Position numbers and translations under genes: made by a program
In this document: one piece after another, positions 5,054-63,438 of the stretch
Position numbering within the stretch: position 1 is the first letter of the stretch
How the letters are laid out: each line of letters opens with the position of its first letter
IMG/VR virus record: IMGVR_UViG_3300026484_000007
Coordinates: 62,001-126,000 of that record
DNA length: 64,000 nucleotides
Strand: one strand, 5' to 3'
Notes under the pieces: model-generated
Seen by the model: only the letters and a program-made list of their open reading frames with translations
Told to the model about the DNA's origin: nothing
The model's database searches: none

Positions 5054-5080
5054 AAAAAGGATCTTTTTTAGATCCTTTTA
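5054..5080 (+). terminator. Hairpin AAAAGGATC-N7-GATCCTTTT after the 1669-aa ORF
   Basis: Inverted repeat with T-tail, intergenic; built on the GATC-N7-GATC motif. Confidence 0.45.
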
Positions 5081-5096
5081 AAATAAGGAGACTAAA

Positions 5097-6821
5097 ATGG
5101 CTGAAATAAATGATACCTCAGTTTTAAATGCGAATGCAGGGATGAGTATTTATGATGTAAATTTTAATTTAATGCAATTCGCTAGCGTTTATAACGATTT
5201 CATTGATACTGTAAATCCTAAAACTATGATTCTTCAGCGAATCGTTAATAAAGAAATTCTATCTGTTGAAATTGAAAATGTCGCAAGTATTAAAAATAAA
5301 TTAAAAAGCGATATTGATAAAGAAAAACAAGATAGAATTGAAGCAGATAATGAAATCAAAAAAACCATTGAAGAAAAAACCGAAGAATTCGATGCTAAAA
5401 TAGCAGCTGAAGCTAAAAAAAGAATCGATCAAGACGTAATTCTTGATAATAAAATCGATACTGAAATTTCTAGAGCTAAAGATGCAGAAAATACTTTAGA
5501 TACAAAAATTATTAATGAATCTAACCGAGCTCTTGAAGCAGAAAAAGATCTTAATGATAAAATTAGTGCTGAAGCTTCACGAGCGAAATCTGTAGAAAAT
5601 CAATTAAGAACTGATTTAGATGCCGAAACTCTTAGAGCTAAAACGACTGAAGATCAATTAAGATCTGATTTAGATGCTGAAGTTCTTAGAGCTAAATCAG
5701 AAGAATCTAAATTAGATTCAAAGATTGAAGACGAAATTACTCGAGCAACTTCTGTTGAAAATGAATTAAGATCTGATTTAGATACAACTATGGATAAATT
5801 AGATCAAGAAATCGATAGAGCTAAAAAAGCTGACGGTTCTTTAGTATTTAACGATACAATCAAAAATGACGATGGAAGTACTCCAGATAACTTAACTGAC
5901 GCAATTAATGACGTTGATGAAAGATACGAGCATATCACATCTTCATTAATTCAAGATCTTTCTTTTGAGTCTAAATTTAGGCAAGAAGAAGATGAAAAAT
6001 TACAAGAAGAAATTTCTAATGAAATTGCTAGAGCTAAAGATGCAGAAGGACCATTAAAATTCAATGATGATATCAGAAATGAAGATGGTACTTTAGCAAC
6101 AGATCTAACAAACGCAATTAATATTGTGGATGATAGATTAAATAATACTACTAAAGCATTAAAAGATAAAGATGAAAAAATTCTTGAATACATTGATGCT
6201 CAAATTGAAAAAATTATAAATGGATCTCCAGAAGCTTTAGATACTTTAAAAGAATTAGCTGATGCGCTTGGAGATGATCCGCAATTTGCTACAACTATTT
6301 TAGATAAAATTTCTAAATTAAATTCTAAAATAGGTAATTTAGATGAATTAAACACTGATGATAAATCTAGTTTAGTAAAAGCATTAATTGAAGTTCAATT
6401 AGAAATCAATAATGAAGCTAAAATTAGAGTCGCTGCAGATAACACTTTAAATACTAAAATTTTAAATGAAGAAGCTAGAGCTAAAGATGCAGAAAAAGAT
6501 TTAGATTATAAAATCGAAAAAGAAATCGATAGAGCAATCAATGAAGATAAAATTCTTGATGATAAAATCGATGAAGAAATTATTCGAGCGAAAGAAGCTG
6601 AAGGTACTCTTGTATTCGAAGAAAACATAAGAAACCACGATGGTACTAAACCAGATAATTTAACTGATGCAATTAATGCAGTTAATAAAACTTGTTTTGA
6701 GAGAATTGATCAAGCATTTGATGCGTTAGATAACTTTGGATCTTTTATAGATACGTTAGATTCTTCTGAACCAAGTATTGACATAGATTTCTTAAAAATA
6801 GAAATCAAAAAATTATTCTAA
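5097..6821 (+). CDS. Tail-fibre-like coiled-coil repeat protein
   Basis: Classic fibre motif GSPEALDTLKELADALGDDPQFATTI; same repeat modules as the upstream ORF; AAGGAG RBS. Confidence 0.7.
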   Translation: MAEINDTSVLNANAGMSIYDVNFNLMQFASVYNDFIDTVNPKTMILQRIVNKEILSVEIENVASIKNKLKSDIDKEKQDRIEADNEIKKTIEEKTEEFDAKIAAEAKKRIDQDVILDNKIDTEISRAKDAENTLDTKIINESNRALEAEKDLNDKISAEASRAKSVENQLRTDLDAETLRAKTTEDQLRSDLDAEVLRAKSEESKLDSKIEDEITRATSVENELRSDLDTTMDKLDQEIDRAKKADGSLVFNDTIKNDDGSTPDNLTDAINDVDERYEHITSSLIQDLSFESKFRQEEDEKLQEEISNEIARAKDAEGPLKFNDDIRNEDGTLATDLTNAINIVDDRLNNTTKALKDKDEKILEYIDAQIEKIINGSPEALDTLKELADALGDDPQFATTILDKISKLNSKIGNLDELNTDDKSSLVKALIEVQLEINNEAKIRVAADNTLNTKILNEEARAKDAEKDLDYKIEKEIDRAINEDKILDDKIDEEIIRAKEAEGTLVFEENIRNHDGTKPDNLTDAINAVNKTCFERIDQAFDALDNFGSFIDTLDSSEPSIDIDFLKIEIKKLF

Positions 6822-6831
6822 GGAGCCTTTT

Positions 6832-7398
6832 ATGTCAAAATTAACTCAAGATATTTTAGAATTATTACAGTATGTAATAGAATTGCAAAAAAATTATGCA
6901 AATGAAAAAGTTGACGAAAAAGTTGACGAAGTTATCGCAGATCTTGGTCAAACCAAAGACGAATTAAAAGCTTTAGTAAACGCATTAGATGCATTAGATT
7001 TCAAAGAAGATGGTGAAATTGATGTTGCTACTTTAACTAAAGCAGTTGCTGATACCAAAGCAGCATTAGAATTAAATGCTAATGATTTAGATGCGTTAAA
7101 AGGTACTATCGCTGATATGACTGCTAACATCAGCAATATTGCAGAAACACTTGGTGGTTTAGATGAAATTGATGCTCTTAAAAATGATATTTCAGGTATC
7201 AAAAACATCATTGATAATTTTACAGGTGATGACGATATCGCTGATCTTAAAGAAAGAGTATCTACAATAGAAACTAAAGTTGAAGATTTATCTTTAGATG
7301 TTGAAGCAATTAAAGCGCAATTAAGTTTAAGCGTTTCCGCTGAAACTTCTGAGTCAACTGAGACTTCTGAGACAGGAACTACTCCTACATCTTTCTAA
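6832..7398 (+). CDS. Acidic coiled-coil protein, possibly structural
   Basis: AAGGAG RBS, heptad pattern, S/T/E-rich tail. Confidence 0.6.
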   Translation: MSKLTQDILELLQYVIELQKNYANEKVDEKVDEVIADLGQTKDELKALVNALDALDFKEDGEIDVATLTKAVADTKAALELNANDLDALKGTIADMTANISNIAETLGGLDEIDALKNDISGIKNIIDNFTGDDDIADLKERVSTIETKVEDLSLDVEAIKAQLSLSVSAETSESTETSETGTTPTSF

Positions 7399-7421
7399 TA
7401 AATTCGTAATAAAAGTTTTTT

Positions 7422-7476
7422 GGGAAAGTGATCTAAAAAAGATCACTTTCCAGCTTTTTTTTGTCGTCAGAAAAAA
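7422..7476 (+). terminator. Hairpin + T-tract + GTCGTCAG-A6 motif
   Basis: ggaaagtgatc-N7-gatcactttcc then T8 gtcgtcag A6. Confidence 0.65.
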
Positions 7477-7601
7477 CTTGAGTTCCAGAACGTTGCGCTT
7501 CTATAGCTATCTAAAGATATATAGCAGTTCTAAAACTAATTTAGAACTCGTATATATCACTTGTATCTAAAAAAGATGCTACATTGAAAATCAAAGTTTT
7601 C
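7471..7601. repeat. Dispersed ~130-bp imperfect palindrome, copy 1
   Basis: Core agcagttctaaa..tttagaactcgtatatatc; arms match copies at 14165, 32705, 39776, 60478. Confidence 0.9.
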
Positions 7602-7677
7602 AACTAAAAATATTTTTAAAACAAAAATTTGGATAAATAAATTTTATCCAAATTTTTATAAAATTTAAGGAGCTAAT

Positions 7678-8532
7678 ATGGCTGATAATACTGTTAATAC
7701 TAATTATGTAACTGAAGATGAATTAAAAGCATTTGCTGAGCAAGTTCATGCATGTGTATTAAATACTATTGCTACAGAAGAAACATCTTATACTGAACTT
7801 GTAAAAGAATTCGTTGAATCTAAAGTTACTGAACTTGAAAATAAATTAGTTAATAACGAAGATTGGCTAAAAGCTAAAGAAACTATTGATTCTTTATTAG
7901 CAGTTTTCGATGAAAACACTGATGGTTCTTTAAGTGCTGAAGAACTTTTAACTAAAATCGGTGAATTCAAAGCTAATGTTGATGCGTTAAGTGCTAAAAT
8001 TGCTGACGTTGAATCTAAAATTGATGCAGGTCTTTCTGATTTAAACGCTAAAATTGCTGTAAATGAATCTACAATTGATGAAGTAACTTCTAAAGTTGAC
8101 GAAGCTTTAAATAACTATAATGATACTGTAGAAAAAGTTGCAACTATCGAAGGTTCTATTACTGACGTTAATGCTAGAATTGACGATGTTGAATCTAAAA
8201 TTGAGGCTGTAGCTCAAGCTGCTGCAGACGGTGTTAGTGAAGAACTTGAAAGCACAGTTGCTACTCTTAAAGAAGACATTGAAACTTTCAAAGCTAACGT
8301 AAATACTGTTGTTGATGAAGCGCAAGAAGAAGTTAAAACTAAAATAATTACTGAAGTTAAAACTGAAGTTTCTGCGATGTTCACTGGAATGCAAGAAGCG
8401 TTCGCTGCGTCTTGTGATGCTGCAAAAACAACTATTGAAGAAAGAATGGCTAATTTAAGATCAGCTTTCGGATTACCAGCTGCGGCTGATACAACTAATA
8501 CTTCTATAGATGGTGATGGTGCAGTAGTTTAA
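7678..8532 (+). CDS. Acidic coiled-coil protein, possibly structural
   Basis: AAGGAG RBS, Ala/Glu/Val-rich heptads. Confidence 0.6.
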   Translation: MADNTVNTNYVTEDELKAFAEQVHACVLNTIATEETSYTELVKEFVESKVTELENKLVNNEDWLKAKETIDSLLAVFDENTDGSLSAEELLTKIGEFKANVDALSAKIADVESKIDAGLSDLNAKIAVNESTIDEVTSKVDEALNNYNDTVEKVATIEGSITDVNARIDDVESKIEAVAQAAADGVSEELESTVATLKEDIETFKANVNTVVDEAQEEVKTKIITEVKTEVSAMFTGMQEAFAASCDAAKTTIEERMANLRSAFGLPAAADTTNTSIDGDGAVV

Positions 8533-9004: not shown

Positions 9005-9050
9005 TTTTTTCTAACGACAAAAAAAGTGGATCCTTTTGGATCCACTTTTT
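9005..9050 (-). terminator. Hairpin + T7-GTCGTTAG-A6 between convergent genes
   Basis: aaaaagtggatccttttggatccacttttt, possibly bidirectional. Confidence 0.65.
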
Positions 9051-9095: not shown

Positions 9096-10676
9096 TTATT
9101 TTACTAATTTATTTTTCATGATAGTCACGAACGAACTTAATTGTCTTTCTAAATCTACTTTATTCTGATCAATAGTATTAAAATCATCATCAACGAATAA
9201 ATTAAAATTTAATTTAATACTTAAATCTTTAGCTATAGCATTCAATATATCATCTACAGCAGCACTATCTCCAATTATTTCATAAAAATAATTAAACATT
9301 TCAAGATTTAAATATTCTTTAATGATATTAAAATTTTTCTTTTTTGAATTATTTTTGAAAAATTTATGATTTAATTTATGATAATAACTTTCTTTAGTAA
9401 AAGAATTTTTAGTAAATTTAGTGATAGTGTTATATAAAAAACTATGATCTAAAAAATTTATTTGATCTTTATTATACGCTCGCATAAAATCAAAATAATT
9501 TGGTTCAAAGAATGATTGAATGAATTCATCGTTATATACTGAAAAATAATCGTCTTTTAAGAATCTCTTATGTTTATTCAAGAATACAACTAACATTGAA
9601 TCAATTATGAAAGTATTCGTATTCAATTCATTACTATCATCAAACACTAAATTAAAATTTTCAGTAAATAAATTTTCTAATTGTTTAAAGAATCCAACTT
9701 TTACTTTACTAAGATTAGTAGCATAAAAACTAAATAAATTTTGATGAATTAAAGTTAAATACGAACTGAATATTGCTCTAAGAGTCATTGGATTTTTATT
9801 TTTAATCGCAGTAAACATTAAATACTTAAGAACTCTTTCAATGATTTGATCAGGAGTAATCATTAAAATATCATAATAAAATTCTCCAATTTTTGTCTTA
9901 CTATTGTATTTTACCAACCATTGTTCGATTAATGATTTAAGTGTTAAAAGAAATCTAGTTAATTCGGCTTGTCTTCCTAAGATCGAATAAAGATCTTTTA
10001 AGAATAATTCTAATGGATTTTTTGCTCTTTTGATGTTAGTAACTTCTTTTTCAGCTAAATACATCTTAGCGAATTCTTCGAGTACTTTTAAATAATAATG
10101 AAATGATACTAATGTCAATTTATTTACACCTTCATCGAACATCGTTAATTCAATATCATCTGTTAAATTTTTATAAATTTCATGATACATTAATTTATCT
10201 TCTTCAGATAAAAATTCATTATTTTCTTCTTTTCTTTTTAACTCTTTATCAATTTTTTCATAAATAAGATTTTTTATATGCTTATCTATTTTAACGAATT
10301 GCTCGATGGTTAATTGTATTTGATATTCATTTTCAGGTTTATTACCAAGAAGAACATCGAGGTTATTAAAAACAACATCTTTATCTAAAACAGAACTTAG
10401 TTCTTCGTAAATATAAGTTTCAATTTCGAAATCAAGATCATGCTCAACTAAGAAATTTTCTACGATTTCTTCAATCTTTTTATAATCGTATTTTAATTTT
10501 TTTTCTTTTTTATCTTTAAGACTAGCGTAAACGAGTTTAAGTTTTTCGTTTACTTTATCATAAGATTTATTTTCAGATTTATTTTCATTTGCCGTTTCCG
10601 GCATCTCTGACGTTTCTATGGATGTTTCATTAGTTGTCTGTACCTGATCCTGATTCTCCATCTTTAACCTCCTCAA
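9096..10676 (-). CDS. Hypothetical protein
   Basis: 526-aa ORF; likely start at MENQ behind GAGG. Confidence 0.7.
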   Translation of the reverse strand: MRRLKMENQDQVQTTNETSIETSEMPETANENKSENKSYDKVNEKLKLVYASLKDKKEKKLKYDYKKIEEIVENFLVEHDLDFEIETYIYEELSSVLDKDVVFNNLDVLLGNKPENEYQIQLTIEQFVKIDKHIKNLIYEKIDKELKRKEENNEFLSEEDKLMYHEIYKNLTDDIELTMFDEGVNKLTLVSFHYYLKVLEEFAKMYLAEKEVTNIKRAKNPLELFLKDLYSILGRQAELTRFLLTLKSLIEQWLVKYNSKTKIGEFYYDILMITPDQIIERVLKYLMFTAIKNKNPMTLRAIFSSYLTLIHQNLFSFYATNLSKVKVGFFKQLENLFTENFNLVFDDSNELNTNTFIIDSMLVVFLNKHKRFLKDDYFSVYNDEFIQSFFEPNYFDFMRAYNKDQINFLDHSFLYNTITKFTKNSFTKESYYHKLNHKFFKNNSKKKNFNIIKEYLNLEMFNYFYEIIGDSAAVDDILNAIAKDLSIKLNFNLFVDDDFNTIDQNKVDLERQLSSFVTIMKNKLVK

Positions 10677-11070
10677 TTTTTTCTTTCATTTTTTTCTTGA
10701 TTTCGACAAATTTTTCTTTTAAACTATGATTAACTTCTTCAATAAGCTCTGCTTCAGATTTCGCAGGATTAGCTTTGAATCCCATCATATTTAATTCAAA
10801 TGTTATACTTTCTGTTAATTCGTATTGATCCAATGGATGAACTTCATCTGGATTTATTGCAGTTACTTGAAAATCTGGATCATCTTCATTTTCAATAAAA
10901 CTGATTTTTACAAAGTATTTATTTTTTAAATCATTTATTTCAACGATATGCGTTTGAATTTTTTCTTGTAAATATTTTTCAAATTCTTCTTTTGATAAGT
11001 CTTTATTATTTTGAAAAATTTCTACAGAAATTAATCTACTCGGTCCAATTTTTTTAGTATTTTCGCTCAT
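10630..11070 (-). CDS. Hypothetical protein
   Basis: AAGGAG RBS; TATAAATA upstream on the minus strand. Confidence 0.65.
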   Translation of the reverse strand: MSENTKKIGPSRLISVEIFQNNKDLSKEEFEKYLQEKIQTHIVEINDLKNKYFVKISFIENEDDPDFQVTAINPDEVHPLDQYELTESITFELNMMGFKANPAKSEAELIEEVNHSLKEKFVEIKKKMKEKIEEVKDGESGSGTDN

Positions 11071-11176
11071 TGTATCTCCTTAAGATCTTTTTATTTATAT
11101 AGGTATATCATTGTTGATCTTTAAAAGATCTCTCTTTAAAAAACAAATTTATATATTTTTAAAGGAGTAAATAAAA

Positions 11177-12115
11177 ATGAAAATTCACGATAATAACCCA
11201 TTTACAAAAATTTTTCTTTTTTTAATACTTTCCGTACTTTTCGTAGCGTTAAATTTTTTTAACGCTTTAAATGCTGCGGAAAATCTAAGTTATCAAGAAA
11301 AGGATCTAAAAAAGATCTCTTCGAATTATGTAAAGAGCCCAAAAAATATAAAAAAACCAAAATTAATTTTTTCTAAAATTCAATTGGATAATTATTATAT
11401 TTATGCTATTTGCGATCAAGTGCTTTTAGATTCATTACAATCAAAATGTTATAGTTATACTTATAAAGCGCCGGTATTTAATTTTTTTAAAATACAATAT
11501 TCACATATCAGAGAAGGGATCAAAAAAAGATACTTTTTTCATTATGATAAAAGAATTCCATCTTTATATAAAAATTATATAAATGATTATACTAAAGGAA
11601 AAGACAAATACGACAAAGGACATCTTGCGCCTGATGCGTCATTTGATTTTGATAAAGAAGTATTAAAAAGTACATATTTATCAAGTAACGTTGTTCCTCA
11701 AGTTCCATATATAAATAGATACATTATTTCAAAAATTGAAAAAGATGAAAGAAATATTGTCAAAAGATCTAAAAAAGATCTTTACGTGTTAACCGGAGCA
11801 GTTTATACGCATTATGATTATAGATATGTAGATGAGAACATTTTTAAAACAAAAGTTCCTTCTGCGATGGTCTTTTTATTTATTCAAGATGAAAAAGTAA
11901 TAAAAGGTTATCTTGTTCCAAATACTTTTAACTTTTCTTTTAAATACAAACAAGCATCTAAAAAAGATCGAAAAAAGATCTTTGAAAATTTAAGAATCAA
12001 AATAAATAAAAAAGATGAAATCAAAAGACTACTATTAAAACTTAATATTAAAAAAATTACTTTTAAAAAAAATAAAAAAAGGATCTTAAATGGATACAAA
12101 GGATACAAATATTGA
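11177..12115 (+). CDS. DNA/RNA non-specific endonuclease (NucA/EndA His-Me family) with N-terminal signal/TM segment
   Basis: DKGHLAP active-site motif, SNVVPQ..IN motif, YVLTGAVY, KVPSAM; hydrophobic N-terminus. Confidence 0.85.
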   Translation: MKIHDNNPFTKIFLFLILSVLFVALNFFNALNAAENLSYQEKDLKKISSNYVKSPKNIKKPKLIFSKIQLDNYYIYAICDQVLLDSLQSKCYSYTYKAPVFNFFKIQYSHIREGIKKRYFFHYDKRIPSLYKNYINDYTKGKDKYDKGHLAPDASFDFDKEVLKSTYLSSNVVPQVPYINRYIISKIEKDERNIVKRSKKDLYVLTGAVYTHYDYRYVDENIFKTKVPSAMVFLFIQDEKVIKGYLVPNTFNFSFKYKQASKKDRKKIFENLRIKINKKDEIKRLLLKLNIKKITFKKNKKRILNGYKGYKY

Positions 12116-12595: not shown

Positions 12596-13168
12596 ATGAA
12601 AATACAAGAATACGATTTAATTAAAAAACGTTTCGGTAAAAAGGTTCCTGAAAAGATCCTTTTCCATAGTTATAAAATGTATCCTAAAGAATTCAATTAT
12701 GATTATAAAAAACATAGGTATTATATTTATATCTATCTTGATCCATTTACATCATACCTTGAACATAATCAATTGGGATATATTGAAAAACCAGAGATCT
12801 TTTTTGGATTCGAACCATTCTATGTTGGTAAAGGAACATCGGGGCATGGATATCGTTTGAATCAACATATCCAACATTTTATAAAAAATAAAGAAAAAAA
12901 TGAGTTTAAAAGATACAAAATGAATGAAATTCAGCAGAAGATGTTTTCTAATAAATATCCGGACAAGCCAAAGAATTGGAAAGAATTTCAAGATCATTTT
13001 GTGATGGTATATAAGGCGTTCGATAACGAACAAGATCTAATGAATACAGAAAAATTATTAATAAATAAAATTGGAACAATAAAAAATATGGATGGTCCAC
13101 TTGTAAATAAAATTACAAATTACGATCAAAAAGCAATAAAAAGGATAGAAGATGTATATTACAGTTAA
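12596..13168 (+). CDS. GIY-YIG-like nuclease domain protein
   Basis: YYIYIYLDP..PFYVGKG..RLNQH..E..LI..GPLVN pattern. Confidence 0.65.
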   Translation: MKIQEYDLIKKRFGKKVPEKILFHSYKMYPKEFNYDYKKHRYYIYIYLDPFTSYLEHNQLGYIEKPEIFFGFEPFYVGKGTSGHGYRLNQHIQHFIKNKEKNEFKRYKMNEIQQKMFSNKYPDKPKNWKEFQDHFVMVYKAFDNEQDLMNTEKLLINKIGTIKNMDGPLVNKITNYDQKAIKRIEDVYYS

Positions 13169-13684: not shown

Positions 13685-14089
13685 ATGGCTTATCATTTTG
13701 GAAAAACATCATTAAAAAGAATGGAAGGTTTAGATAGTGATCTTATAAAGATCCTTAACCTTGCAATCAAAGAAACTAAGCAAGATTTTAGTGTTATTGA
13801 AGGTCTGCGAACTGCGGAACGACAATACGAATTATATCAAGAAGGTCAAAGTGAGCTTGATGGCTACGAAAGAAAATCAATGCATCAATTTGGAAAAGCA
13901 GTTGATATTGCTCCATACAAAGATGGAAAATTAGTATGGGGAATTGACGAAGATCCAAAAGCTTGGTTAGAAGTTGGAAGAGCGATGCTAAGAGCTGCTC
14001 GAAAATTAAATATATGTTTAGAATGGGGATTAACTTACAACATCGGTAATGGATACGATGCACCTCATTTTCAATTAAATGAAAAGTGA
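13685..14089 (+). CDS. Endolysin, M15 peptidase (L-Ala-D-Glu endopeptidase, T5-lys-like)
   Basis: EGLRT.ERQ..LY..G.S, SMH..GKAVD, DAPHFQL zinc-ligand motifs. Confidence 0.88.
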   Translation: MAYHFGKTSLKRMEGLDSDLIKILNLAIKETKQDFSVIEGLRTAERQYELYQEGQSELDGYERKSMHQFGKAVDIAPYKDGKLVWGIDEDPKAWLEVGRAMLRAARKLNICLEWGLTYNIGNGYDAPHFQLNEK

Positions 14090-14125
14090 TCTTTTAAAGA
14101 TCACTTTTTTTGTCGTTAGAAAAAA
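14083..14125 (+). terminator. Hairpin + T-tract + GTCGTTAG-A6
   Basis: aaagtgatcttttaaagatcacttt followed by the motif. Confidence 0.65.
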
Positions 14126-15456: not shown

Positions 15457-15566
15457 TTTAGAACTCGTATATATCCTTAGTATCCAAAAAAGATGCTACA
15501 TAGAAAATCAATGTTTTCTAAGAATTTTTTCTAACGACAAAAAAACTCTCGCATATGCGAGAGTTT
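15457..15566. repeat. Right-half palindrome copy plus hairpin-T7-GTCGTTAG terminator (minus strand)
   Basis: tttagaactcgtatatatcc..agatgctaca; aaactctcgcatatgcgagagttt hairpin. Confidence 0.8.
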
Positions 15567-17156: not shown

Positions 17157-17169
17157 TAATTCTCCTTTT

Positions 17170-21417: not shown

Positions 21418-21418
21418 A

Positions 21419-54313: not shown

Positions 54314-54374
54314 ATATCTTTAATTGATCTTTGAAAGATCATTTGCGTTCTAATTCTACTCAATATCTCGCGAC

Positions 54375-54866
54375 TTATAGATCCCACGGAAATAACAACC
54401 AACCTTTTGGTTTTTTTTCTGCGTAATAATCTACTAAGTCTCCTTTATTTCTTCCTTTATACATAACTGCTGTATAAATTTCAACATCTGCGAATTCATT
54501 ATTTGCGTCTAAAATTGCTTTAATTGTTTCGCCAGTATCAGTCAAATCATCGACTAATAAAATTTTTTTGCCATCAAATTTTTTTAATTGATGCCTGATA
54601 TGATTTATAATATCATCGGTTACTTCTTTAGGCTCAGCATCATCTTCATAAAGAGTTACATCTATTAAATCAGTTTCTCTAATATTAAGATAATAACTTA
54701 AATATCCTCCTGGAACAATTCCTCCTCTATTTATCATCACTATTTTATCAAATTTTTTATCTTCATGACATACATCAGATTGTATTTCTTCTGCCAATTT
54801 TTTACATGCGTTTTGAACATCTTCTGGCGTAATTAATACTTTTCCATCATCCAATTTTAGCATCAT
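54375..54866 (-). CDS. Type I purine phosphoribosyltransferase (Gpt-like)
   Basis: INRGG, LLVDDLTDTGET PRPP loop, WLLFPW C-terminus. Confidence 0.88.
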   Translation of the reverse strand: MMLKLDDGKVLITPEDVQNACKKLAEEIQSDVCHEDKKFDKIVMINRGGIVPGGYLSYYLNIRETDLIDVTLYEDDAEPKEVTDDIINHIRHQLKKFDGKKILLVDDLTDTGETIKAILDANNEFADVEIYTAVMYKGRNKGDLVDYYAEKKPKGWLLFPWDL

Positions 54867-55332: not shown

Positions 55333-57495
55333 CTAAAGCTCTTCATTTTCATCTTCGAATTTCATTCCGAAAACATGAAGGGCATTATTTAGAGTTTTCT
55401 TAGTCACTGAATTATATTTATCTTTAAGATAATATTCACCATCTCTAATATATTTAATAATAAAGTTTTGCTTTTCATCTAAAGCATCAGATTTAATTGT
55501 ATAAATTTCTTTTAGAACAGCATTATCTTCTTTATGCGCTAATAACGCTGCAAGTGATTGCCAACTTACGTGAGCTCCACCACCTTTTTTTCTACCTCTT
55601 ACTGGCTGACCAGTGATTTTTGAATACGCACTTGTAAAACTAACACTATTAAATTTTCCAAAACTTGTATGATGTAATTTTAGCATATAATTCCAAGAGC
55701 TAAATAACATCAACTCTGTTTCATTATAATCATTAAATGGATCTTTAAATCCATAATTTTTTCTAAGCCATTCTAATAATTCAGATGAATATTTGATTTT
55801 TTGCTTACCTATATTTAGGTCGAATCTTTTCGCGTATGGTTTAATAAAAGTATTCATAAGCTCTTTATATGAAATATTCGGGAAGTTTGGGACATATAAA
55901 TAAAAATTGTTTTTATTTATATCATTTATAAATAATTTCGCAAATTCTTCATTATCTAAATTATTAATGATATTTTCAACATCTTGATAATAATCAAGAT
56001 CATATTTTTTTATAAAATTTTCATTTATAAAATTAATTTTTTCTTTTAGAGTTTCTATCGTTTCCGATCCTTCTAAGATCTTTTTAACAGTATTCTCTAC
56101 ATCGATAATGATTTTTGAAACCGCTAATTCAAATACAACTCCCCAGTTATTTCTTCCAGGAATTCCTAATGAATTAAATATCATATCAAAAGGTTTTCCA
56201 GTGCTTGGATCTTTTGGCATTAACTCATCTGGAATAATCATTGCAATAGTTGCTTTTCCAGCAAATAAGTTAGTGAATTTATCACCTCTTGTTGTGTTTA
56301 AATAAATCTTTGAATCTAATTCAATTAGAAAATCCATATCATTAAATTCTTTGATTAAGTATTCTTCCATCAACATTTGCTTATAATGCTTATATTGTTT
56401 TTCCATTGATAAATACTGTGAATAAATTTGCTCAGTTAATTCTTTAGCTTTTTCTTTATTCATTCCAATATTTAAAAATGAATCATAAACATTTTTCTTC
56501 TTTTTAACATTAGCTATAATTAAATCTTCTAATTCATTAATTATACCTCTTGTGTAAATATATTTTTCATCAAGTTTTCTTATTTCTTTAATAAGATCTT
56601 TTAAAGATTCGTCCGTAAGTTCTTGATCCATATCTATCGATCTTAATTCTCTAAGAATATCTTCATTAAATATATGAAGTTTCATAGTAACAACATCGGA
56701 ATTTAATAATCCATCAATTTTTTTAGTAAAAAATTTAGATGGAGTTTTATCAGCATTGATAATTTCTGATGAAAAGTGTTTACTAGTATCAATTTCAAGA
56801 TACTTGATATAATCATCTTTCACATGCATTCCAACATAAGGTAGATATGTTTCAATTTCTTTTTCTTCATCTCTTACTATTTTAAAATATTTCCAATGTT
56901 TTAGAATTGGAATATAAGTTTTTTTAATTACAGTCTTTTGAGCTTTTTTTGAAAAACTTTCAGAAATAACAATTGCATCATCTGCGTTGTATCCAAAGAA
57001 TGAAGTGAATAAAATGTTTGCTCTGTATCCTATTTTAGGTAATTTATTTTCAATATTCATTCCGGTATAATCATAAAGAACTTCTCCTTTTTTGAAGAAT
57101 TTTTTATCTATTTTATATTTTAAATCTAATGAATACTCGATTAACTTTCTACCTTCTGGCAAATGTTTAGTAATCATTTTTTTCTGATTTTTATAATAAA
57201 TTACTAAAATATTATCATCGTTATGTAACACAATTCCATCATCTTCCGCGAATTCCACGAAAGGAGATTGGATTGTACTAATCTTTTGAAATTCTTTATC
57301 AATCATAAAAGGAGTATCAACATTCTTTGATAACATTGGTTGAACTCCTTGTTTGTAAGACATATTTAATCTATTATTGTCTACTGTTTGTGCGAAAGGT
57401 ACGAAAATTTCGATTTGAGGACTGAAAATTGTTTTTACTAACTTTTGTGTTTTTTCCGTTTCTTTTTTCATCTCTTTTGCTATTTCTTTTGCCAT
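55333..57495 (-). CDS. Multisubunit RNA polymerase beta-like subunit, C-terminal part
   Basis: FGYNADDAIVISE, GDKF..FAGKAT, NSLGIPGRNN.G, YMLKLHH, YSKITGQPVRGRKKGGG. Confidence 0.92.
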   Translation of the reverse strand: MAKEIAKEMKKETEKTQKLVKTIFSPQIEIFVPFAQTVDNNRLNMSYKQGVQPMLSKNVDTPFMIDKEFQKISTIQSPFVEFAEDDGIVLHNDDNILVIYYKNQKKMITKHLPEGRKLIEYSLDLKYKIDKKFFKKGEVLYDYTGMNIENKLPKIGYRANILFTSFFGYNADDAIVISESFSKKAQKTVIKKTYIPILKHWKYFKIVRDEEKEIETYLPYVGMHVKDDYIKYLEIDTSKHFSSEIINADKTPSKFFTKKIDGLLNSDVVTMKLHIFNEDILRELRSIDMDQELTDESLKDLIKEIRKLDEKYIYTRGIINELEDLIIANVKKKKNVYDSFLNIGMNKEKAKELTEQIYSQYLSMEKQYKHYKQMLMEEYLIKEFNDMDFLIELDSKIYLNTTRGDKFTNLFAGKATIAMIIPDELMPKDPSTGKPFDMIFNSLGIPGRNNWGVVFELAVSKIIIDVENTVKKILEGSETIETLKEKINFINENFIKKYDLDYYQDVENIINNLDNEEFAKLFINDINKNNFYLYVPNFPNISYKELMNTFIKPYAKRFDLNIGKQKIKYSSELLEWLRKNYGFKDPFNDYNETELMLFSSWNYMLKLHHTSFGKFNSVSFTSAYSKITGQPVRGRKKGGGAHVSWQSLAALLAHKEDNAVLKEIYTIKSDALDEKQNFIIKYIRDGEYYLKDKYNSVTKKTLNNALHVFGMKFEDENEEL

Positions 57496-57513: not shown

Positions 57514-58734
57514 TTATAAATTTTTTAATTTAAGTCTACCATATTCATTTACTAACGTTTGAGTTGTAAACACTACATTAGCTCCAACGTTTGCCGCCGA
57601 TACACTAATTGGACAAAGAATTCCTTGTGCACTAGAATCATTTCTCTGCCAAGATTTAGGCAATCTTCCATCATTAATAACACTAATATCTTGAGATACT
57701 TTATTTATTAATGGTAATGCGTAAGGAATACTGATATCATATAAATTTCCTCTATGAAGATTATTTGTAAAACCAGATGTCATAATTACTTTTTGATTCA
57801 TTGTAATTAAAAAGTTTTGACCGTTTTTATCTATTACTCCATAAAGTAATCTTAAATAAGATTCAAAAATCGGTTTAATTAAATACTCAGAATGAATAAT
57901 TCTTCTATTATGAATATCAGACATATCTATTTTTTCTCCAGTTAAAAATAACTCGATGATTTTCCAAACGATATTTTTTATTCCTCTAAATCCATAGAAA
58001 TCTTCAAATAGTTCGTGATAAAAATCTAAAATTAAAAATGTATCAATCCATTTAACAAGATCGATATCATCGAAAAAAGATTCTTTATGGAAACCCAAAA
58101 ATTTTACAAATTTTCTTTTATCTCCAAGAGTGGTTTCTTTAGTATGAATTAAACCATTTTGATAAAGTTCTTCAAGTTTATCTTCATCATCTTTAAAGAT
58201 CACTCTTAAGAATAAATCTAATTCTATTTTTTTATAATTAAAAAATACAATTCTTTCAATTTTCTTTTTGCTTTTATTAGCAACATGAAAATCAAATGTA
58301 AAATTATACATTGGATTTAAATTTGCATAAATTTTATTTTTAATTACTTTTGCATCTGGTTCCGACATAACCCTATCAATAGGAGCTTTTTCAAGCATTA
58401 AAATTGGAACGTAAAGAGCGTTGTTTAAAGTATAATAATTTTTTTGAATCAATTTAGGCACAAAGAAACTAAACTCTCTTGAAAAGTTTTTGTATTCTTG
58501 ATAAATATAATATTCATCTTGATAGGTAATAAAATCTCCGAGGTATGGAGATATATTACTTTTCTTTTCAATTAACACTTTATATTCTGGATCAATCAAT
58601 TTAATTTTATTAAAAATTTCGTGAACCGTCTTTTCGATCTTTTGATGATCAACTTCTCTCCACTCGTGTAAATGCATAAAATTTTTATCGCTTTCTGCCG
58701 TTTTATAAACATTTTCGTATACAATTGTATTCAT
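57514..58734 (-). CDS. RNA polymerase beta-like subunit, N-terminal part
   Basis: DIHNRRI..EY, GILCPISVS..NVG (cf. GRICPIETPEGPNIG); adjacent to the C-terminal part. Confidence 0.72.
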   Translation of the reverse strand: MNTIVYENVYKTAESDKNFMHLHEWREVDHQKIEKTVHEIFNKIKLIDPEYKVLIEKKSNISPYLGDFITYQDEYYIYQEYKNFSREFSFFVPKLIQKNYYTLNNALYVPILMLEKAPIDRVMSEPDAKVIKNKIYANLNPMYNFTFDFHVANKSKKKIERIVFFNYKKIELDLFLRVIFKDDEDKLEELYQNGLIHTKETTLGDKRKFVKFLGFHKESFFDDIDLVKWIDTFLILDFYHELFEDFYGFRGIKNIVWKIIELFLTGEKIDMSDIHNRRIIHSEYLIKPIFESYLRLLYGVIDKNGQNFLITMNQKVIMTSGFTNNLHRGNLYDISIPYALPLINKVSQDISVINDGRLPKSWQRNDSSAQGILCPISVSAANVGANVVFTTQTLVNEYGRLKLKNL

Positions 58735-60477: not shown

Positions 60478-60632
60478 GAAAACTTGTGTTTCCAGAACGT
60501 TAAGCATCATTGGATACACAAAGATATATAGCAGTTCTAAAAATTTTAGAACTGCTTTTATATCGCTTGTATCTAAAATAGATGCTACGTGGAAAATCAA
60601 AGTTTTTACAGTTTTTTCTAGCGACAAAAAAA
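60478..60632. repeat. Dispersed palindrome copy plus T7-GTCGCTAG-A6 motif
   Basis: Close match to the 39776 copy. Confidence 0.9.
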
Positions 60633-60684: not shown

Positions 60685-62697
60685 TTATTTATATATATTA
60701 ATTAAATCTCTATACATATGATCAACTGATTCATTTTTTCTAGATGTAAATATTTTTTGAATAGTTTTATTTCCAAAATTATAAAATATCGTTAATTTTG
60801 GATCAATATTATTAATTACATCTTTCAATGCAAATTGTTTCACGATAGGTTTATCACTGTATCTATATAATACATCATCTTCATCATAGAAAATTAATGA
60901 TAATACCAGTTCGAAATAAACATTGAAAATATCAGTTTCATCTGAAACATTTATTAATTTATCATAAATTTCTTCAATTGGAACAAGATTTTTCTTATCT
61001 CTATTTTTATCAATTAAACCAGTAATACTATTTAAGATTTTTACTGCATCTTCAGAGAATGGTAAATCAATTACATGAATTCTTAACATTCCTTGTTCTT
61101 CATTAAGATGAAGATCGATTGCTTCTGGTTGATATTTATCTTCTAAATAATTTACGATCAATTTTAGATCTTCTAAAGATCCTTTTAAGATCGTTACTTC
61201 AGAATCACTATAATCTACATCGATTCTTCTTAAAACTTCTTGCACTTGCTTATCTTCATTTGCTAAGAAAACCCCACCAAAATGATGCGCACGAAGTACG
61301 CTTTGGATTGTTGCTTCGCTTAAATATTGTCCTATCGGTGCTCCAAGGTTTGCTGTCGTTGGTCTTTTTTCACCTAAACATTTTGGACAAACTTGATAGT
61401 TTGGCATTTGGCAAGTGATTGGTGATCTTAATAAGATCTTTTTACCAATTAAATGATTTTCATCTCCTTGAATCATTAATTCTTTATCACCATCTAATTC
61501 TTTATACCATCTGTATTTTAAAGTTTTTAAATATTTCTCATTTTTAATTAAAATTTCAAAATATCTTTCTTTTCCAGTGTGTTCAAAACAATCTTGAACT
61601 TCTTTATTTTGCTTTAAAATCCCAGCAGTAAAAAAGAATTTTCTTTGAAGTTCTCCACCTTTTGGAATTGCGTCCTGTCTTTGTCCAAGAGCTAATCTTG
61701 CACTATCTCCAGTATTAAAATATTCATCTTGAGTTAAACCATCAAGTAAAGAATTTTTAATATTCATTGGCATCGCTCTACCATAAATATCAGTAGGAAT
61801 TCCAGTATTACTTGCTGCTTTTAATAACTGAACTGATTTTAATCTTGCTCCAGATTGAAAAAGAGAATTAAAGAAACTCGTATCTTTTTTAGATACTTCT
61901 GTTGTAATATAATCTTCATAAAGTACCATATTTTGCTGGAATGCTAAAAATGGTTCTCCTTGAATTAACTTAGTCTTGAATTTATTAATTTCATCACTTT
62001 CAACAATGAAATCATCTAATTCAAATGTTGGACAAGCGTAATCTAATCTCGAACCGGCTTCTAATAAAAATTTATTAAATTTATGAATTCTATCCCAGAA
62101 TTGTCCACCGATATTATTCTTTTTTAAGAATTCATTGTAATCGTATGTTAATTTATTTAATCCTTTTTTATTCAATAAACCATATTTTTCGAAAGTATAT
62201 AAATGATAGATTTCTGAATCATTTGATTGAATCTTATAAACATCAAGAATTTGATTTATTATAACTTCAAAATATGATAAAATTTTACCTTGAATCATTA
62301 CTGGTCTTCCACCATATTTCATAAGTTTATTCATCGTAATTAAAAATATAGGATCTAATTCCTTATAAATCCTTTCAACTGTTTGGATATTTTCTTGATT
62401 TTTTTCTTCTTCATCCATTTGAGAAAAATCATCAATAAGTTCTTGAGGATTAAAATTTTCATACGCTTTCTTTGATAACATGAAAGCACCATAGATACTT
62501 TCATGTTCATAATCAATTAAAAGTTTATCAGTATGTTCAAATTCAATATTGTTTTTAATGAACATTGCAGCGAAATCGCGTTTTGCTTGTTTTGAATGAA
62601 GAGATAAAGATAACATACTATCCCCATCAAAATCCGCATTAAAGAACGCTGACACTAAATCGTTTAATTCAATAACTCTATTTTTTTTATATTCCAT
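60685..62697 (-). CDS. RNA polymerase beta'-like subunit, catalytic/C-terminal part
   Basis: FNADFDGD near the N-terminus; SGAR; bridge helix ARLAL..GGELQR; LRSPITC..CPKC; trigger loop QSVLRAHHFGG. Confidence 0.93.
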   Translation of the reverse strand: MEYKKNRVIELNDLVSAFFNADFDGDSMLSLSLHSKQAKRDFAAMFIKNNIEFEHTDKLLIDYEHESIYGAFMLSKKAYENFNPQELIDDFSQMDEEEKNQENIQTVERIYKELDPIFLITMNKLMKYGGRPVMIQGKILSYFEVIINQILDVYKIQSNDSEIYHLYTFEKYGLLNKKGLNKLTYDYNEFLKKNNIGGQFWDRIHKFNKFLLEAGSRLDYACPTFELDDFIVESDEINKFKTKLIQGEPFLAFQQNMVLYEDYITTEVSKKDTSFFNSLFQSGARLKSVQLLKAASNTGIPTDIYGRAMPMNIKNSLLDGLTQDEYFNTGDSARLALGQRQDAIPKGGELQRKFFFTAGILKQNKEVQDCFEHTGKERYFEILIKNEKYLKTLKYRWYKELDGDKELMIQGDENHLIGKKILLRSPITCQMPNYQVCPKCLGEKRPTTANLGAPIGQYLSEATIQSVLRAHHFGGVFLANEDKQVQEVLRRIDVDYSDSEVTILKGSLEDLKLIVNYLEDKYQPEAIDLHLNEEQGMLRIHVIDLPFSEDAVKILNSITGLIDKNRDKKNLVPIEEIYDKLINVSDETDIFNVYFELVLSLIFYDEDDVLYRYSDKPIVKQFALKDVINNIDPKLTIFYNFGNKTIQKIFTSRKNESVDHMYRDLINIYK

Positions 62698-62724
62698 ATT
62701 AATTCTCCTTTATTTTTTTAATCT

Positions 62725-63153
62725 TTATTTTAACGCTTTATGTAAATCAGTCTTGAACTCTTCATCTTCAATCCAGCACGAAGGAATTACTTTATTGATA
62801 TGCATTTTCTTTTTAATTTCTTCGATAATTAAAGATAAAATTATATCATAATCTTTCTTAGATTTTAATTTAATTAACTTAAGATATTTAAGAATTATGT
62901 CAGCTCCGACGCAAGATACTTTTTCAATGTCTTTTAAAGAGAGATCTTTTTTAGATCTTTCTATAGAAACTCCATATAATTTTTTATATAATTTAGGATC
63001 GCCATAAATATCAGGAATTAAAATTCCTTTCTTTTTTTCCTTTTGGAATTCTTGAATATAATCAATGATCTTTCCAGGATCTTTTAAATCATTAATACTA
63101 AGAAATCTTACTATTTTATCTTTCAAATCATATTTCATTTTTGCTCTTGCCAT
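62725..63153 (-). CDS. Hypothetical basic protein
   Basis: AAGGAG RBS. Confidence 0.6.
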   Translation of the reverse strand: MARAKMKYDLKDKIVRFLSINDLKDPGKIIDYIQEFQKEKKKGILIPDIYGDPKLYKKLYGVSIERSKKDLSLKDIEKVSCVGADIILKYLKLIKLKSKKDYDIILSLIIEEIKKKMHINKVIPSCWIEDEEFKTDLHKALK

Positions 63154-63165
63154 TTTTTTTCTCCT

Positions 63166-63438
63166 TTATAAAGCTTGAAATTCTAACCAACTTACCCAAG
63201 TTCCTTCGTCTTCGACTGATCTTTCTAAGATCTTTTCTATAAAATCTTCAGTTACCTGAATGTCATTATAAATACTTTGATTTTTATTTGGCTGAAATGT
63301 TCCTGTTTGAAGATAGGCGATTTTATATTTATCGCCTTTATAATAGCAAAACATTTCATTTTTAAAAATTTTAATACTATCTACAAACACTGTTAATTTT
63401 TTATTCGATTTTTTCATTAAAGCTTGAATTCTAATCAT
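63166..63438 (-). CDS. Hypothetical protein
   Basis: AAGGA RBS. Confidence 0.55.
   Translation of the reverse strand: MIRIQALMKKSNKKLTVFVDSIKIFKNEMFCYYKGDKYKIAYLQTGTFQPNKNQSIYNDIQVTEDFIEKILERSVEDEGTWVSWLEFQAL

Follow-up and report, generated by a model that had tools for sequence, protein, structure and literature searches.

An 11-bp-phased GATC palindrome is iterated about 250 times, mostly inside genes, in the genome of an uncultured giant phage from hydrothermal vents

The window analysed was a stretch of 64,000 nucleotides corresponding to positions 62001-126000 of a 272.6-kb jumbo-phage contig from a hydrothermal vent (IMG/VR record IMGVR_UViG_3300026484_000007). It starts with a large fibre-like ORF (2-5011) and further fibre-like ORFs (5097-8532), and includes, among others, an M15 peptidase ORF (13685-14089), a DNA polymerase gene, an SMC/Rad50-like ATPase ORF (19023-20978), a DUF6884 ORF (29256-29702), type II topoisomerase subunits, a homing-endonuclease-like ORF (50080-51645) and the RNA polymerase beta and beta' genes. 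Between positions 826 and 63232, 72 copies of the motif GATC-N7-GATC were found, 60 of them in ORFs and 12 intergenic.

In the fibre-like ORF 2-5011, which carries 9 pairs (826-4802) with less A/T-rich spacers, three phased GATCs were observed at 1276-1301 (plus strand; spacers containing G/C, recurring peptide EI..RS) and again at 4777-4802 (plus strand). On the minus strand, ORF 18176-19066 contains an array of three GATCs in 11-bp phase (18409-18434) and a copy with a 14-bp perfect stem (18652-18684; peptide ERSKKDLS; −22.9 kcal/mol, z −6.4). The neighbouring ATPase ORF 19023-20978 has 9 pairs in all, the densest in the window, including an array of four (19315-19351, minus strand) and two arrays of three (19445-19470 and 19577-19602, both minus strand, each with the peptide KRSFEDQL). 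Stems of 11 and 10 bp accompany the copies at 29385-29411 (minus strand), inside the DUF6884 ORF, and at 45460-45486 (minus strand), at the overlap of ORFs 44457-45512 and 45470-45943. In beta', an array of four phased GATCs lies at 61156-61192 (minus strand; amino acids 500-516) and a further copy at 61424-61438 (minus strand). By contrast, the stretch 29412-36962, covering two unknown ORFs and the type II topoisomerase subunits, has no perfect pair in 7.5 kb, and only 2 core sites were found in 30-36 kb, against about 16 expected.

Most intergenic copies cap long hairpins that resemble terminators. Thus, on the plus strand, a 10-bp stem with a 5-nt loop and a T run lies just after the stop of ORF 2-5011 (5055-5079; −11.8 kcal/mol, z −2.8), a 12-bp stem followed by T8 lies after ORF 6832-7398 (7423-7451; −18.1 kcal/mol, z −5.2), and a hairpin overlapping the stop of the M15 peptidase ORF is followed by a T run (14082-14108; −13.4 kcal/mol, z −3.8). 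Similarly, on the minus strand, hairpins were found after the stop of ORF 22881-24809 (22867-22893; −15.9 kcal/mol, z −4.0), at 29105-29133 (12-bp stem; −14.1 kcal/mol, z −4.3) and, followed by a T run, after the stop of ORF 52881-53555 (52863-52887; −16.3 kcal/mol, z −4.8). A variant hairpin between convergent ORFs (9021-9050) has GGATCC-tttt-GGATCC, with a GATC spacing of 10 rather than 11. Downstream of ORF 27178-28932, four perfect tandem 28-bp units (27057-27168, minus strand) each hold one 23-bp palindromic copy; this is the only such array found in 93% of the genome. The copy at 11116-11130, in the divergent intergenic region between ORFs 10630-11070 (minus strand) and 11177-12115 (plus strand), has no long stem, and one further intergenic copy lies at 54326-54340, between ORFs 53603-54313 and 54375-54866.

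To establish whether the pairing exceeds chance, the spacings between GATCs were counted and compared with several controls. The window has 378 GATCs (146 expected from base composition). Pairs exactly 11 bp apart numbered 72, against 2.2 expected from 378 independent sites (32-fold), whereas spacings of 10 and 12 bp gave 4 and 1, respectively. A synonymous-codon shuffle gave 19.4 ± 2.3 pairs, a codon-order shuffle 9.7 ± 0.9, and a dicodon-preserving shuffle, which keeps all 378 GATCs, 17.7 ± 2.4; about 10 pairs in each control are intergenic copies that were not shuffled. No other tetranucleotide paired with its reverse complement at this spacing was comparably enriched. Pairs in ORFs fell in frames 0, 1 and 2 in 24, 18 and 18 cases. 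Absence of a peak after shuffling and confinement to a single frame had been set beforehand as refuting outcomes, and neither was observed.

The observation made in the initial annotation is therefore confirmed, and is stronger than first described. Its estimate of 55-60 pairs between 5060 and 63232 compares with 63 counted here, every example coordinate it gave is correct, and the recurring peptides it listed (DLKKI, RSKKDL and SFEDP/Q, with SFEDH also seen) were found. However, three points needed correction. It saw no pairs in the first fibre gene, whereas ORF 2-5011 carries the 9 pairs mentioned above, upstream of its start coordinate; ORFs 5097-8532 and the homing-endonuclease-like ORF indeed have none. 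It described the spacers as usually A/T, but only 30 of 72 are purely A/T, with a mean A+T content of 0.87 genome-wide. It also missed that the intergenic copies are long terminator-like hairpins.

The enrichment extends beyond the window. Across 93% of the contig (254 kb), 228 pairs were counted at 11 bp (0.9 per kb), against 16 at 10 bp and 6 at 12 bp; frames 0, 1 and 2 held 79, 57 and 36 copies, with 56 intergenic or boundary copies. Thus, 75-83% of the copies lie in ORFs, although per base pair non-coding DNA carries about three times more copies than coding DNA. The unequal use of frames fits coding constraint but does not prove function. The distribution is uneven (variance/mean 2.2, with empty 7-kb stretches), and copies are not concentrated near gene ends. 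In about 473 kb from some 45 relatives (beta' 38-63% identical), including two from the same sample, only 3 pairs were found. The sequence was reproduced at 99.3% identity in an independent 2025 sample, a strain with too few differences to reveal purifying selection on the sites.

Analysis of the 228 sites defined a 21-bp dyad, A-R-N-GATC-TTT-N-AAA-GATC-N-Y-T. In the symmetrised logo, A(-3) reached 0.70, T(+4) 0.81, T(+5) 0.66 and T(+6) 0.54, with conserved inner T/A, outer A(-3)/T(+17) and an A/T-rich centre. Spacers showed no orientation bias relative to transcription (TAAAAAA 9, TTTTTTA 7). The strongest core, ATCT-N5-AGAT, occurs 95 times against about 6 at other spacings (16-fold), and 49 of the 95 sites lack the outer G, the outer C or both. 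When degenerate copies are included, the window has 168 ATC-N7-GAT sites against about 36 at other spacings. One-mismatch sites numbered 74, against about 25 at control spacings, mostly at the outermost base (GATT, GATA or GATG), a graded degeneracy typical of a binding site. Lone GATCs have a flat context. An intact Dam site is therefore not required.

The word is conserved as sequence rather than as a base-paired structure. Where the outer pair is not G..C, it is complementary in only 11 of 49 cases, about the chance level. Of the 60 copies inside genes, 36 have no pairing beyond GATC, and a typical one folds weakly (−4.2 kcal/mol, z −1.2).

To study how the copies arose, 8 sites in the DNA polymerase, beta and beta' genes were aligned at the codon level with up to 13 orthologues (a ninth site, at 17180 in the DNA polymerase C-terminus, had no aligned orthologue). 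Synonymous and non-synonymous substitutions were observed, and no motif-length indels. The four-GATC array in beta' was made by several substitutions, including amino-acid changes, relative to 13 orthologues. For its part, the copy at 61424-61438 lies in a conserved segment (G-K-K-I-L-L-R-S-P); its right half uses the conserved Arg-Ser codons, whereas its left half was created by a Thr-to-Lys change and a synonymous Ile change relative to the closest relative.

Taken together, the analyses establish that the word is real and specific to this one lineage, that it sits in all reading frames and in non-coding DNA, that it was built by point substitutions that sometimes changed amino acids in conserved proteins, and that it is conserved as sequence. 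From this we infer, with moderate confidence, that it is a recognition site, used genome-wide and read on duplex DNA by a two-fold symmetric protein, either a dimer or a dimer of dimers; the binding itself is inferred from sequence alone. Each half would contact one ATC/GAT major groove, the two grooves lying one helical turn (11 bp) apart on the same face of the helix, across an A/T-rich and presumably narrow minor groove, and arrays of three or four phased sites would allow side-by-side cooperative binding. No cognate protein was found. The initial annotation had pointed to HTH proteins at 45997-48814 (minus strand), but these three adjacent lineage-specific ORFs gave only sub-threshold HTH hits and remain mere candidates; two of them, searched with a word index, had no hit apart from themselves, and ORF 48095-48814 had 13 weak relatives in an exhaustive search. 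Moreover, no known DNA-binding regulator needs about 250 sites placed mostly inside genes, which leaves the selective benefit unexplained.

The interpretation offered in the initial annotation, a binding lattice for a dimeric DNA-organising protein or the target of a DNA-modifying enzyme, with SeqA as an analogy, was thus partly supported. Selection or a drive acts on the DNA and not on the peptides, and the site has the expected shape of a target for a two-fold symmetric protein, whether a binder or a modifier, which the data cannot separate. The SeqA/Dam analogy, however, fails on detail. SeqA binds pairs of hemimethylated GATCs on one helical face, tolerates one to three turns and needs intact, Dam-methylated GATC. 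Here two GATCs also lie one turn apart on the same face, and phased arrays occur, but only 11 bp is enriched: 9 of 10 pairs at 22 bp, and 3 of 10 at 33 bp, have a GATC in 11-bp phase between them (the third being pair 14931, whose intervening GATC is itself in phase), and the remaining 33-bp pairs are a weak excess. In addition, the outer G/C is dispensable, and the inner flanks and A(-3)/T(+17) are also specified. No (D/N/S/T)PP(Y/F/W/H) or PCQ methyltransferase motif occurs in any ORF of 60 aa or more in the 254 kb examined, apart from one spurious 62-aa ORF, and no methyltransferase appeared among the Pfam hits for the window ORFs or for the called genes of the rest of the contig, a search that left out about 7% of the genome and the host.

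Among the alternatives, the one that survives best, although only tentatively, is that the word is the target of a two-fold symmetric DNA-modifying enzyme, an epigenetic self mark, such as the phage's own 7-deazaguanine transglycosylase or a host methyltransferase of the bipartite Type I kind; sites would be enriched because marked DNA is spared by a host or phage nuclease. In agreement with this, the phage encodes a full 7-deazaguanine pathway: a QueC with an extra N-terminal region, a TGT/DpdA-like protein, DUF6884, a queuosine-salvage-like protein, and GTP cyclohydrolase I, PTPS and radical-SAM genes. Known phage DpdA enzymes act on short motifs such as GA, which GATC contains (PMC10484667, PMC7544227), and a 4 + N7 + 4 palindrome has the shape of a bipartite restriction-modification target. 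However, known DpdA motifs are 2-3 bases long and not bipartite, and the outer G of GATC is the least constrained core position, which is odd if that G is the modified base. No cognate specificity or methylase genes of the Type I or IIB kind were seen in the phage sequence examined, which does not cover host enzymes, and restriction targets are normally avoided by phages, whereas this site is enriched.

Action at the RNA level, as a hairpin for termination, attenuation or processing of transcripts made by the phage's own multisubunit RNA polymerase, with copies inside genes as weak pause or processing sites, is unlikely as a general explanation. About a dozen intergenic copies do form stable hairpins (−12 to −18 kcal/mol, z −3 to −5) right after stop codons and followed by U runs, and probably double as intrinsic terminators, and relatives have heterogeneous hairpins with no shared word. 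Nevertheless, most copies inside genes have no such stem and fold no better than shuffles, the outer pair shows no covariation, copies do not cluster near gene ends, and the spacers show no orientation preference although an A-rich and a U-rich loop are different RNAs.

Equally unlikely is a non-adaptive molecular drive, in which the word would have no function of its own. Candidates would be a biased short-patch repair or gene-conversion activity that turns near-matches into matches, as very-short-patch repair does for CCWGG in E. coli, or incorporation of an abundant short oligonucleotide by the phage recombination machinery. In its favour, sites arise by clustered substitutions at pre-existing half-matches, for example next to the conserved Arg-Ser codons in beta', one-mismatch sites are three-fold enriched, the word appears in only one lineage, and such drives are debated for HIP1 and uptake sequences. 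However, no repair endonuclease or methyltransferase that could supply the bias was seen, and a drive would still need a protein that recognises the same dyad, so that this reading differs from the preferred one only in whether the sites are useful. The co-option into terminator tips suggests tolerance rather than cost.

Still more doubtful is imposition by the host, the word being the host's own iterated sequence or the site of a host nucleoid protein that the phage has adapted to or titrates. Relatives, presumably on other hosts, lack the iterated word and no phage-encoded binder was found, but a partial scan of 185,579 species genomes, a collection that may not include the host, with a 21-bp degenerate version returned at least 120 loci, only single scattered hits, none of the returned loci being enriched. 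Finally, despite the recurring peptides and a 15-bp motif length equal to five codons, an artefact of protein repeats, codon bias or chance, or in-frame insertion of a mobile palindromic element (REP, MITE or Rickettsia palindromic elements), is refuted by the shuffles, by the use of three frames and non-coding DNA, by the absence of five-codon insertions relative to orthologues and by the reproduction of the sequence in the 2025 sample.

Among described systems, the closest precedent is the 17-bp dyad repeat of Cluster O mycobacteriophages (TGTTCGG-N3-CCGAACA), with 34 copies per roughly 70 kb, an A/T centre, no orientation bias and no tie to promoters, about a third of the copies lying in genes, which its authors interpret as a site for a dimeric DNA-binding protein (PMC4351075). 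That repeat differs in sequence and geometry (7-bp arms, 3-bp centre), and here the copies are more numerous and mostly in genes, and amino-acid-changing origin and co-option into terminator-like hairpins are demonstrated. HIP1 (GCGATCGC) of cyanobacteria is likewise a hyper-abundant, lineage-specific palindrome containing GATC, found in coding and non-coding DNA, selected at the DNA level and of debated function (PMC5861425, PMC4390886), but it is a contiguous octamer of cellular genomes linked to two methyltransferases, whereas the phage word is bipartite, the intact GATC is dispensable and no methyltransferase was found. DNA uptake sequences (USS of Pasteurellaceae, DUS of Neisseria) also occur near 1 per kb, arise by point mutation, are tolerated in all frames with recurring peptides and are used as inverted pairs in terminators; they are, however, asymmetric 9-12-mers driven by the competence machinery of cells, whereas a phage has no uptake step and the word here is itself a dyad. 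The stoperators of Cluster A mycobacteriophages and the dispersed operators of phage P1 are many repressor sites spread over a phage genome, including transcribed regions (PMC4351075), but they are asymmetric, oriented with transcription, mostly intergenic and number 20-35 per genome. Operators of ribbon-helix-helix proteins and ParR/parC iterons have short subsites repeated with a period of one helical turn (11-bp iterons in plasmid R1 parC; Arc operator half-sites about 11 bp apart) bound cooperatively by dimers, and the phage does encode an actin-like ALP protein. Those sites are clustered at one locus, whereas here they are dispersed; the single tandem array is about 76 kb from the actin-like gene, and density near that gene is low.

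Because sites are spread through the whole genome rather than at promoters, the inferred protein is more likely an architectural or own-genome recognising factor than a gene-specific regulator. In this view, selection or a drive linked to that protein has enriched the word wherever coding constraints tolerate it. In intergenic DNA, where the palindrome would cost nothing, it has been built into the tips of longer hairpins followed by T runs, which probably act as intrinsic terminators, much as uptake sequences are built into terminators in Neisseria and Haemophilus. The DNA word itself is thus probably being favoured in this phage, most likely as a docking site for a two-part protein.

The window (26.1% G+C) contained 378 GATC sequences, against 146 expected from base composition, and 72 pairs whose starts were exactly 11 bp apart, whereas a spacing of 10 gave 4 pairs and a spacing of 12 gave 1. 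The chance expectation from 378 sites was 2.2. The initial annotation, which had reported GATC pairs in 11-bp phase throughout the region, was thus correct in its observation, and all the positions that it listed were confirmed. Within the interval that it had covered (5060-63232) there were 63 pairs, while nine more were located in the large fibre-like ORF 2-5011, which had been thought to contain none.

To study whether codon usage or protein sequence could account for the excess, three codon-aware controls were performed. Shuffling of synonymous codons within each gene gave 19.4 +/- 2.3 pairs, shuffling of codon order gave 9.7 +/- 0.9, and a dicodon-preserving segment-swap shuffle, which keeps all 378 GATC, gave 17.7 +/- 2.4, about ten of the pairs in each control being intergenic copies that were left untouched. 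Protein repeats and codon bias were therefore rejected as explanations. Among all 256 tetranucleotides paired with their reverse complement at this spacing, only GATC stood out, at 32-fold, which also ruled out a general quasi-palindrome correction. Sixty pairs were in ORFs, in frames 24/18/18, and twelve were intergenic. Hence, neither of the two outcomes that had been set beforehand as refuting the observation (loss of the peak upon shuffling, or confinement to a single reading frame) was obtained.

The window corresponds to positions 62001-126000 of IMG/VR contig UViG_3300026484_000007 (272,602 bp), from a hydrothermal-vent metagenome. A search of GenBank returned no near-identical phage, and a literature search found no report of this phage or of this word. 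However, a strain 99.3% identical (for example, 23 differences in 3373 bp; window 16900-22800) was present in an independent 2025 study, so the feature is not an assembly artefact. That study was carried out seven years after the 2018 vent sample, so the lineage and its motif persist. About 37 single-nucleotide differences were observed in 5.9 kb, none of those listed falling in a core, which are too few to test constraint on the sites.

By walking along the contig, we assembled 254,485 bp (93%) with no conflicting base, leaving out about 18 kb (contig positions 1-16442 and 162324-163998). This sequence held 1483 GATC (619 expected) and 228 pairs at 11 bp, against 16 at 10 bp and 6 at 12 bp, which corresponds to 0.90 per kb. 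Nearly every 4-kb bin contained copies, and three bins had none. The phage is a jumbo phage, with split multisubunit RNA polymerase genes (beta' with the NADFDGD motif at 60685-62697 and beta at 55333-57495, the pieces of both being 55333-57495, 57514-58734, 60685-62697 and 63471-63986), a split family-B DNA polymerase, a type II topoisomerase and many ORFs without known relatives. The DNA polymerase appears to be divided into separate adjacent ORFs, an exonuclease part with a Pfam hit at 16056-17156 and a following part at 17170-18165 that is conserved in relative L002 (one of the loci compared).

The word was not shared with relatives. We collected 13 viral loci and 35 metagenome or ENA loci encoding beta' proteins 38-63% identical to that of this phage, which together gave about 473 kb of nonredundant sequence and included two phages from the same sample. 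They held 3 pairs in all, and GATC was at its expected frequency. Other spacing peaks seen in two of the relatives' loci, L006 and L012, corresponded to ordinary tandem repeats and not to equivalent words, and the intergenic hairpins of the relatives were heterogeneous. In a scan of IMG/VR for the commonest 15-mer, this contig was the only one with multiple copies among those returned, the rest being single chance hits. Similarly, a scan of 185,579 species genomes for a degenerate 21-mer gave at least 120 scattered single hits, with no enriched genome among those returned.

Either oriented on the sense strand or symmetrized over all 228 copies, the site is a dyad. Position -3 is A (0.70) and -2 is A or G, followed by GATC, then T (0.81), T (0.66), T (0.54) and a free center, and then the mirror image. 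Spacers are 87% A+T, and the two commonest, TAAAAAA (9) and TTTTTTA (7), are mirror images and equally frequent relative to the direction of transcription. The 243 GATCs that are not in a pair showed a flat sequence context, and, since total GATC in the codon-order shuffle was 234, they are no more frequent than codon content predicts. The unit is therefore the pair and not GATC. The outermost G and C are the weakest part of the site. Thus, there were 74 one-mismatch sites at spacing 11, against about 25 at control spacings, and 53 of them were GATT, GATA or GATG. ATC-N7-GAT occurred 168 times against about 36, and ATCT-N5-AGAT 95 times against about 6. Only 46 of those 95 had G..C outside, and the other outer pairs were complementary in 11 of 49 cases, about what chance gives. 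So the sequence is conserved, whereas a base-paired structure is not, and an intact Dam-type GATC is not required.

To determine how the copies arose, the DNA polymerase and the RNA polymerase beta and beta' genes were aligned, codon by codon, with up to 13 orthologues. The alignments showed substitutions and no motif-length indels, and the in-frame insertion of a 15-bp element was therefore rejected. In the conserved beta' segment G-K-x-I-L-L-R-S-P, the right half-site uses the conserved Arg-Ser codons, while the left half-site was created by a Thr-to-Lys change plus a synonymous Ile change relative to the closest relative. For their part, the four GATCs in 11-bp phase at beta' residues 500-516 were produced by several changes, including Val-to-Ile, Glu-to-Lys, Asp-to-Ser, Lys-to-Leu, Ile-to-Leu and Tyr-to-Leu. 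The word has thus been written into genes by point mutation, at some cost in amino acids, which rules out insertion of a mobile mini-palindrome.

Two populations of copies were distinguished. About a dozen intergenic copies sit at the tip of perfect 9-14-bp stems, flanked by an A run upstream and a T run downstream, directly after stop codons (5055, 7423, 14082, 22867, 29105, 52863, and four tandem 28-bp units at 27057-27168). A near-variant with 10-bp spacing lies at 9021. As RNA they are predicted to fold at -12 to -18 kcal/mol (z -2.8 to -5.2), and they look like intrinsic, partly bidirectional terminators. Most copies inside genes are different: 36 of 60 have no complementarity beyond GATC, and a typical one folds no better than shuffled sequence (-4.2 kcal/mol, z -1.2). 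Genome-wide, about 25% of copies lie in the roughly 10% of sequence outside our approximate ORF calls, where the density is about three times higher, yet three quarters of all copies are inside genes, in frames 79/57/36.

Copies were not concentrated near gene starts or stops, and their distribution was uneven (variance/mean 2.2, chi-square p = 6e-5). The stretch at 29.4-37.0 kb, covering two unknown ORFs and the topoisomerase, is empty, whereas the peak is in ORFs 18176-20978. In that otherwise motif-free stretch, a perfect palindrome with a 15-bp stem and CGATCG on each arm is located at 32201-32233, inside ORF 32095-32667. The homing-endonuclease-like ORF 50080-51645 (DUF7487) has no core sites at all, against 4.1 expected (p 0.016), and ORF 12596-13168, possibly an endonuclease but with no Pfam hit, has no perfect pair, which is consistent with a recent arrival of these genes. 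The ORF at 11177-12115, a DNA/RNA nonspecific endonuclease by Pfam (E 1e-24) with an N-terminal hydrophobic, signal-like segment, carries three motif copies. Spacings of 22 bp were almost all accounted for by seven arrays of three or four phased GATCs, as were three of the ten 33-bp pairs, and the remaining 33-bp pairs are a weak excess.

Other palindromes were also observed. A second, longer dyad word with core GCAGTTCTAAA-(1-5 nt)-TTTAGAACTGC occurs 15 times across the genome, roughly every 10-30 kb, at 7521-7553, 32756-32788, 39829-39855 and 60530-60556 in the window and at 11 more positions on the contig. In the window it is always between co-directional genes, and it is also absent from the relatives' loci. 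It looks like a classical operator, promoter or terminator element, in contrast with the GATC word that lies inside genes. A third hairpin type, probably a terminator, is represented by two copies of a G+C-rich palindrome (AAACTCTCGC, a 4-nt loop, GCGAGAGTTT) in intergenic DNA at 15543-15566 and 39919-39942. In addition, a perfect palindrome with a 19-bp stem, a 3-nt loop and A/T-run flanks lies at 20871-20911, inside the annotated 5' part of ORF 19023-20978. Since the ATPase domain of this ORF starts only at residue 228, the ORF may be two genes separated by a terminator.

In the search for a protein that could read the word, no DNA methyltransferase signature was found, by either the amino-methyltransferase motif IV or the C5 PCQ motif, in any ORF of 60 aa or more over 254 kb. 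None appeared among the Pfam hits for the window ORFs, or among the precomputed Pfam hits for called genes over most of the rest of the contig. The phage does encode a complete 7-deazaguanine pathway: a QueC with an extra N-terminal region (21419-22807), a TGT/DpdA-like protein (48837-50075; atlas feature scores of 0.94 to TGT and 0.90 to DpdA clusters, and TM 0.62 to archaeal TGT), DUF6884 (29256-29702), a queuosine-salvage-like protein (44457-45512) and a phosphoribosyltransferase (54375-54866), plus, outside the window, GTP cyclohydrolase I, PTPS/QueD and several radical-SAM enzymes (contig about 166-183 kb and 258-270 kb). Its guanines are therefore probably modified, as in other phages with this pathway (PMC10516641). 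The phage DpdA motifs described are only 2-3 bases long.

The three ORFs at 45997-48814, which the initial annotation had called HTH proteins, showed only subthreshold HTH hits, and their protein-atlas scores were below 0.8. The two that were searched (45997-47211 and 48095-48814) found no protein apart from themselves in a word-indexed search, while the last one found 13 weak relatives, mostly matching its C-terminal region, in an exhaustive search. PDB sequence searches with the DpdA-like ORF and two of the HTH ORFs yielded no useful hit. The three ORFs are lineage specific, like the word, but many ORFs of this phage are too, and they are candidates and nothing more.

Among the remaining genes, a kinase-phosphatase fusion (AAA_33 plus Metallophos, like polynucleotide kinase-phosphatase; 22881-24809), a T4-type RNA ligase elsewhere on the contig (about 142-143 kb) and a HAD domain of RNA-repair proteins (36468-36989) together suggest an RNA-repair module. 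Outside the window, the phage also encodes an actin-like (ALP/MreB-like) protein, a Csx3-like protein and a Tad2-like protein at contig positions about 164.8-165.7 kb, 173.3-173.6 kb and 177.5-178.1 kb, respectively (18432-19343, 10517-10813 and 6005-6604 in L309, a locus of this contig). The last two may be antidefense factors against cyclic-nucleotide signaling. No cluster of sites was observed near the actin-like gene, in discordance with a centromere.

The anatomy of the site fits recognition of duplex DNA by a two-fold symmetric protein, given the strict 11-bp center-to-center distance, a dyad symmetry that extends three bases beyond each GATC, the A/T-rich center, the graded degeneracy, the phased arrays, the lack of covariation and the lack of orientation relative to transcription. 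In this view, each half of the protein would sit in one major groove on the same face of the helix. The genome-wide spread inside genes argues for an architectural or own-genome-recognizing role rather than promoter control, and the palindrome would have been adopted into terminator tips, where it costs nothing. While the excess, its restriction to this lineage, its occurrence in all frames and its origin by point substitution are direct results of the analysis, the recognition geometry and the existence of a cognate protein are inferred from sequence, as are termination at the hairpins and modification of guanines, any benefit to the phage is hypothetical, and we consider this reading about as likely as not. 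The interpretation of the initial annotation, a binding lattice for a phage dimeric DNA-organizing protein or the target of a DNA-modifying enzyme, with SeqA as one analogy, was accordingly supported only in part.

The alternatives are weaker. The best surviving one, although unlikely, is that the word is the target of a symmetric modifying enzyme, that is, a self-mark. An RNA-level signal and a nonadaptive repair or conversion drive are both doubtful, and a word imposed by the host is slightly less likely still. An artefact or a mobile element is effectively refuted.

The closest published case is the 17-bp dyad repeat of Cluster O mycobacteriophages, with 34 copies, an A/T center, no orientation bias and one third of copies in genes, whose function has not been established (PMC4351075). 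In density, point-mutation origin, presence in all frames and use in terminators, the word behaves like HIP1 of cyanobacteria and like bacterial uptake sequences, but it differs in being bipartite and viral. It is not a member of the Dam/SeqA system, since an intact GATC is not required, no methyltransferase was found in the sequence examined, and spacing is not tolerant. It is also not a stoperator, a REP-like element or a centromere. Iterated dyad words of unknown function are thus already known, and this one is unusual for its copy number, its location inside genes and the clear before-and-after picture that the relatives provide.

A more speculative reading, which we regard as possible but less likely than not, is that the phage has evolved a virus-encoded equivalent of an uptake or self sequence. 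About 250 phased-dyad sites would then form a genome-wide lattice that lets a phage protein tell its own chromosome from host DNA, for selective compaction or packaging, for shielding from a nuclease, or for directing 7-deazaguanine insertion. The word would have spread through the genome by drive or selection strong enough to change amino acids in core enzymes.

Hyper-abundant short words inside genes, such as HIP1 and uptake sequences, are known from cells, and their causes are still argued, while in phages the nearest case, that of the Cluster O mycobacteriophages, has tens of copies, mostly between genes, and remains unexplained. This phage offers a cleaner natural experiment: one lineage has gained about 250 copies that about 45 relatives lack, the ancestral state is visible in orthologues, the cost is visible as amino acid changes in RNA polymerase, and the genome is small enough that the cognate protein could be found among a few hundred ORFs. 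If the word proves to be a by-product of biased repair, it would be a rare documented molecular drive in a virus. The identity of a cognate protein, for its part, would give a very specific 21-bp protein-DNA pair and could reveal a new way in which a large virus organizes, marks or protects its chromosome.
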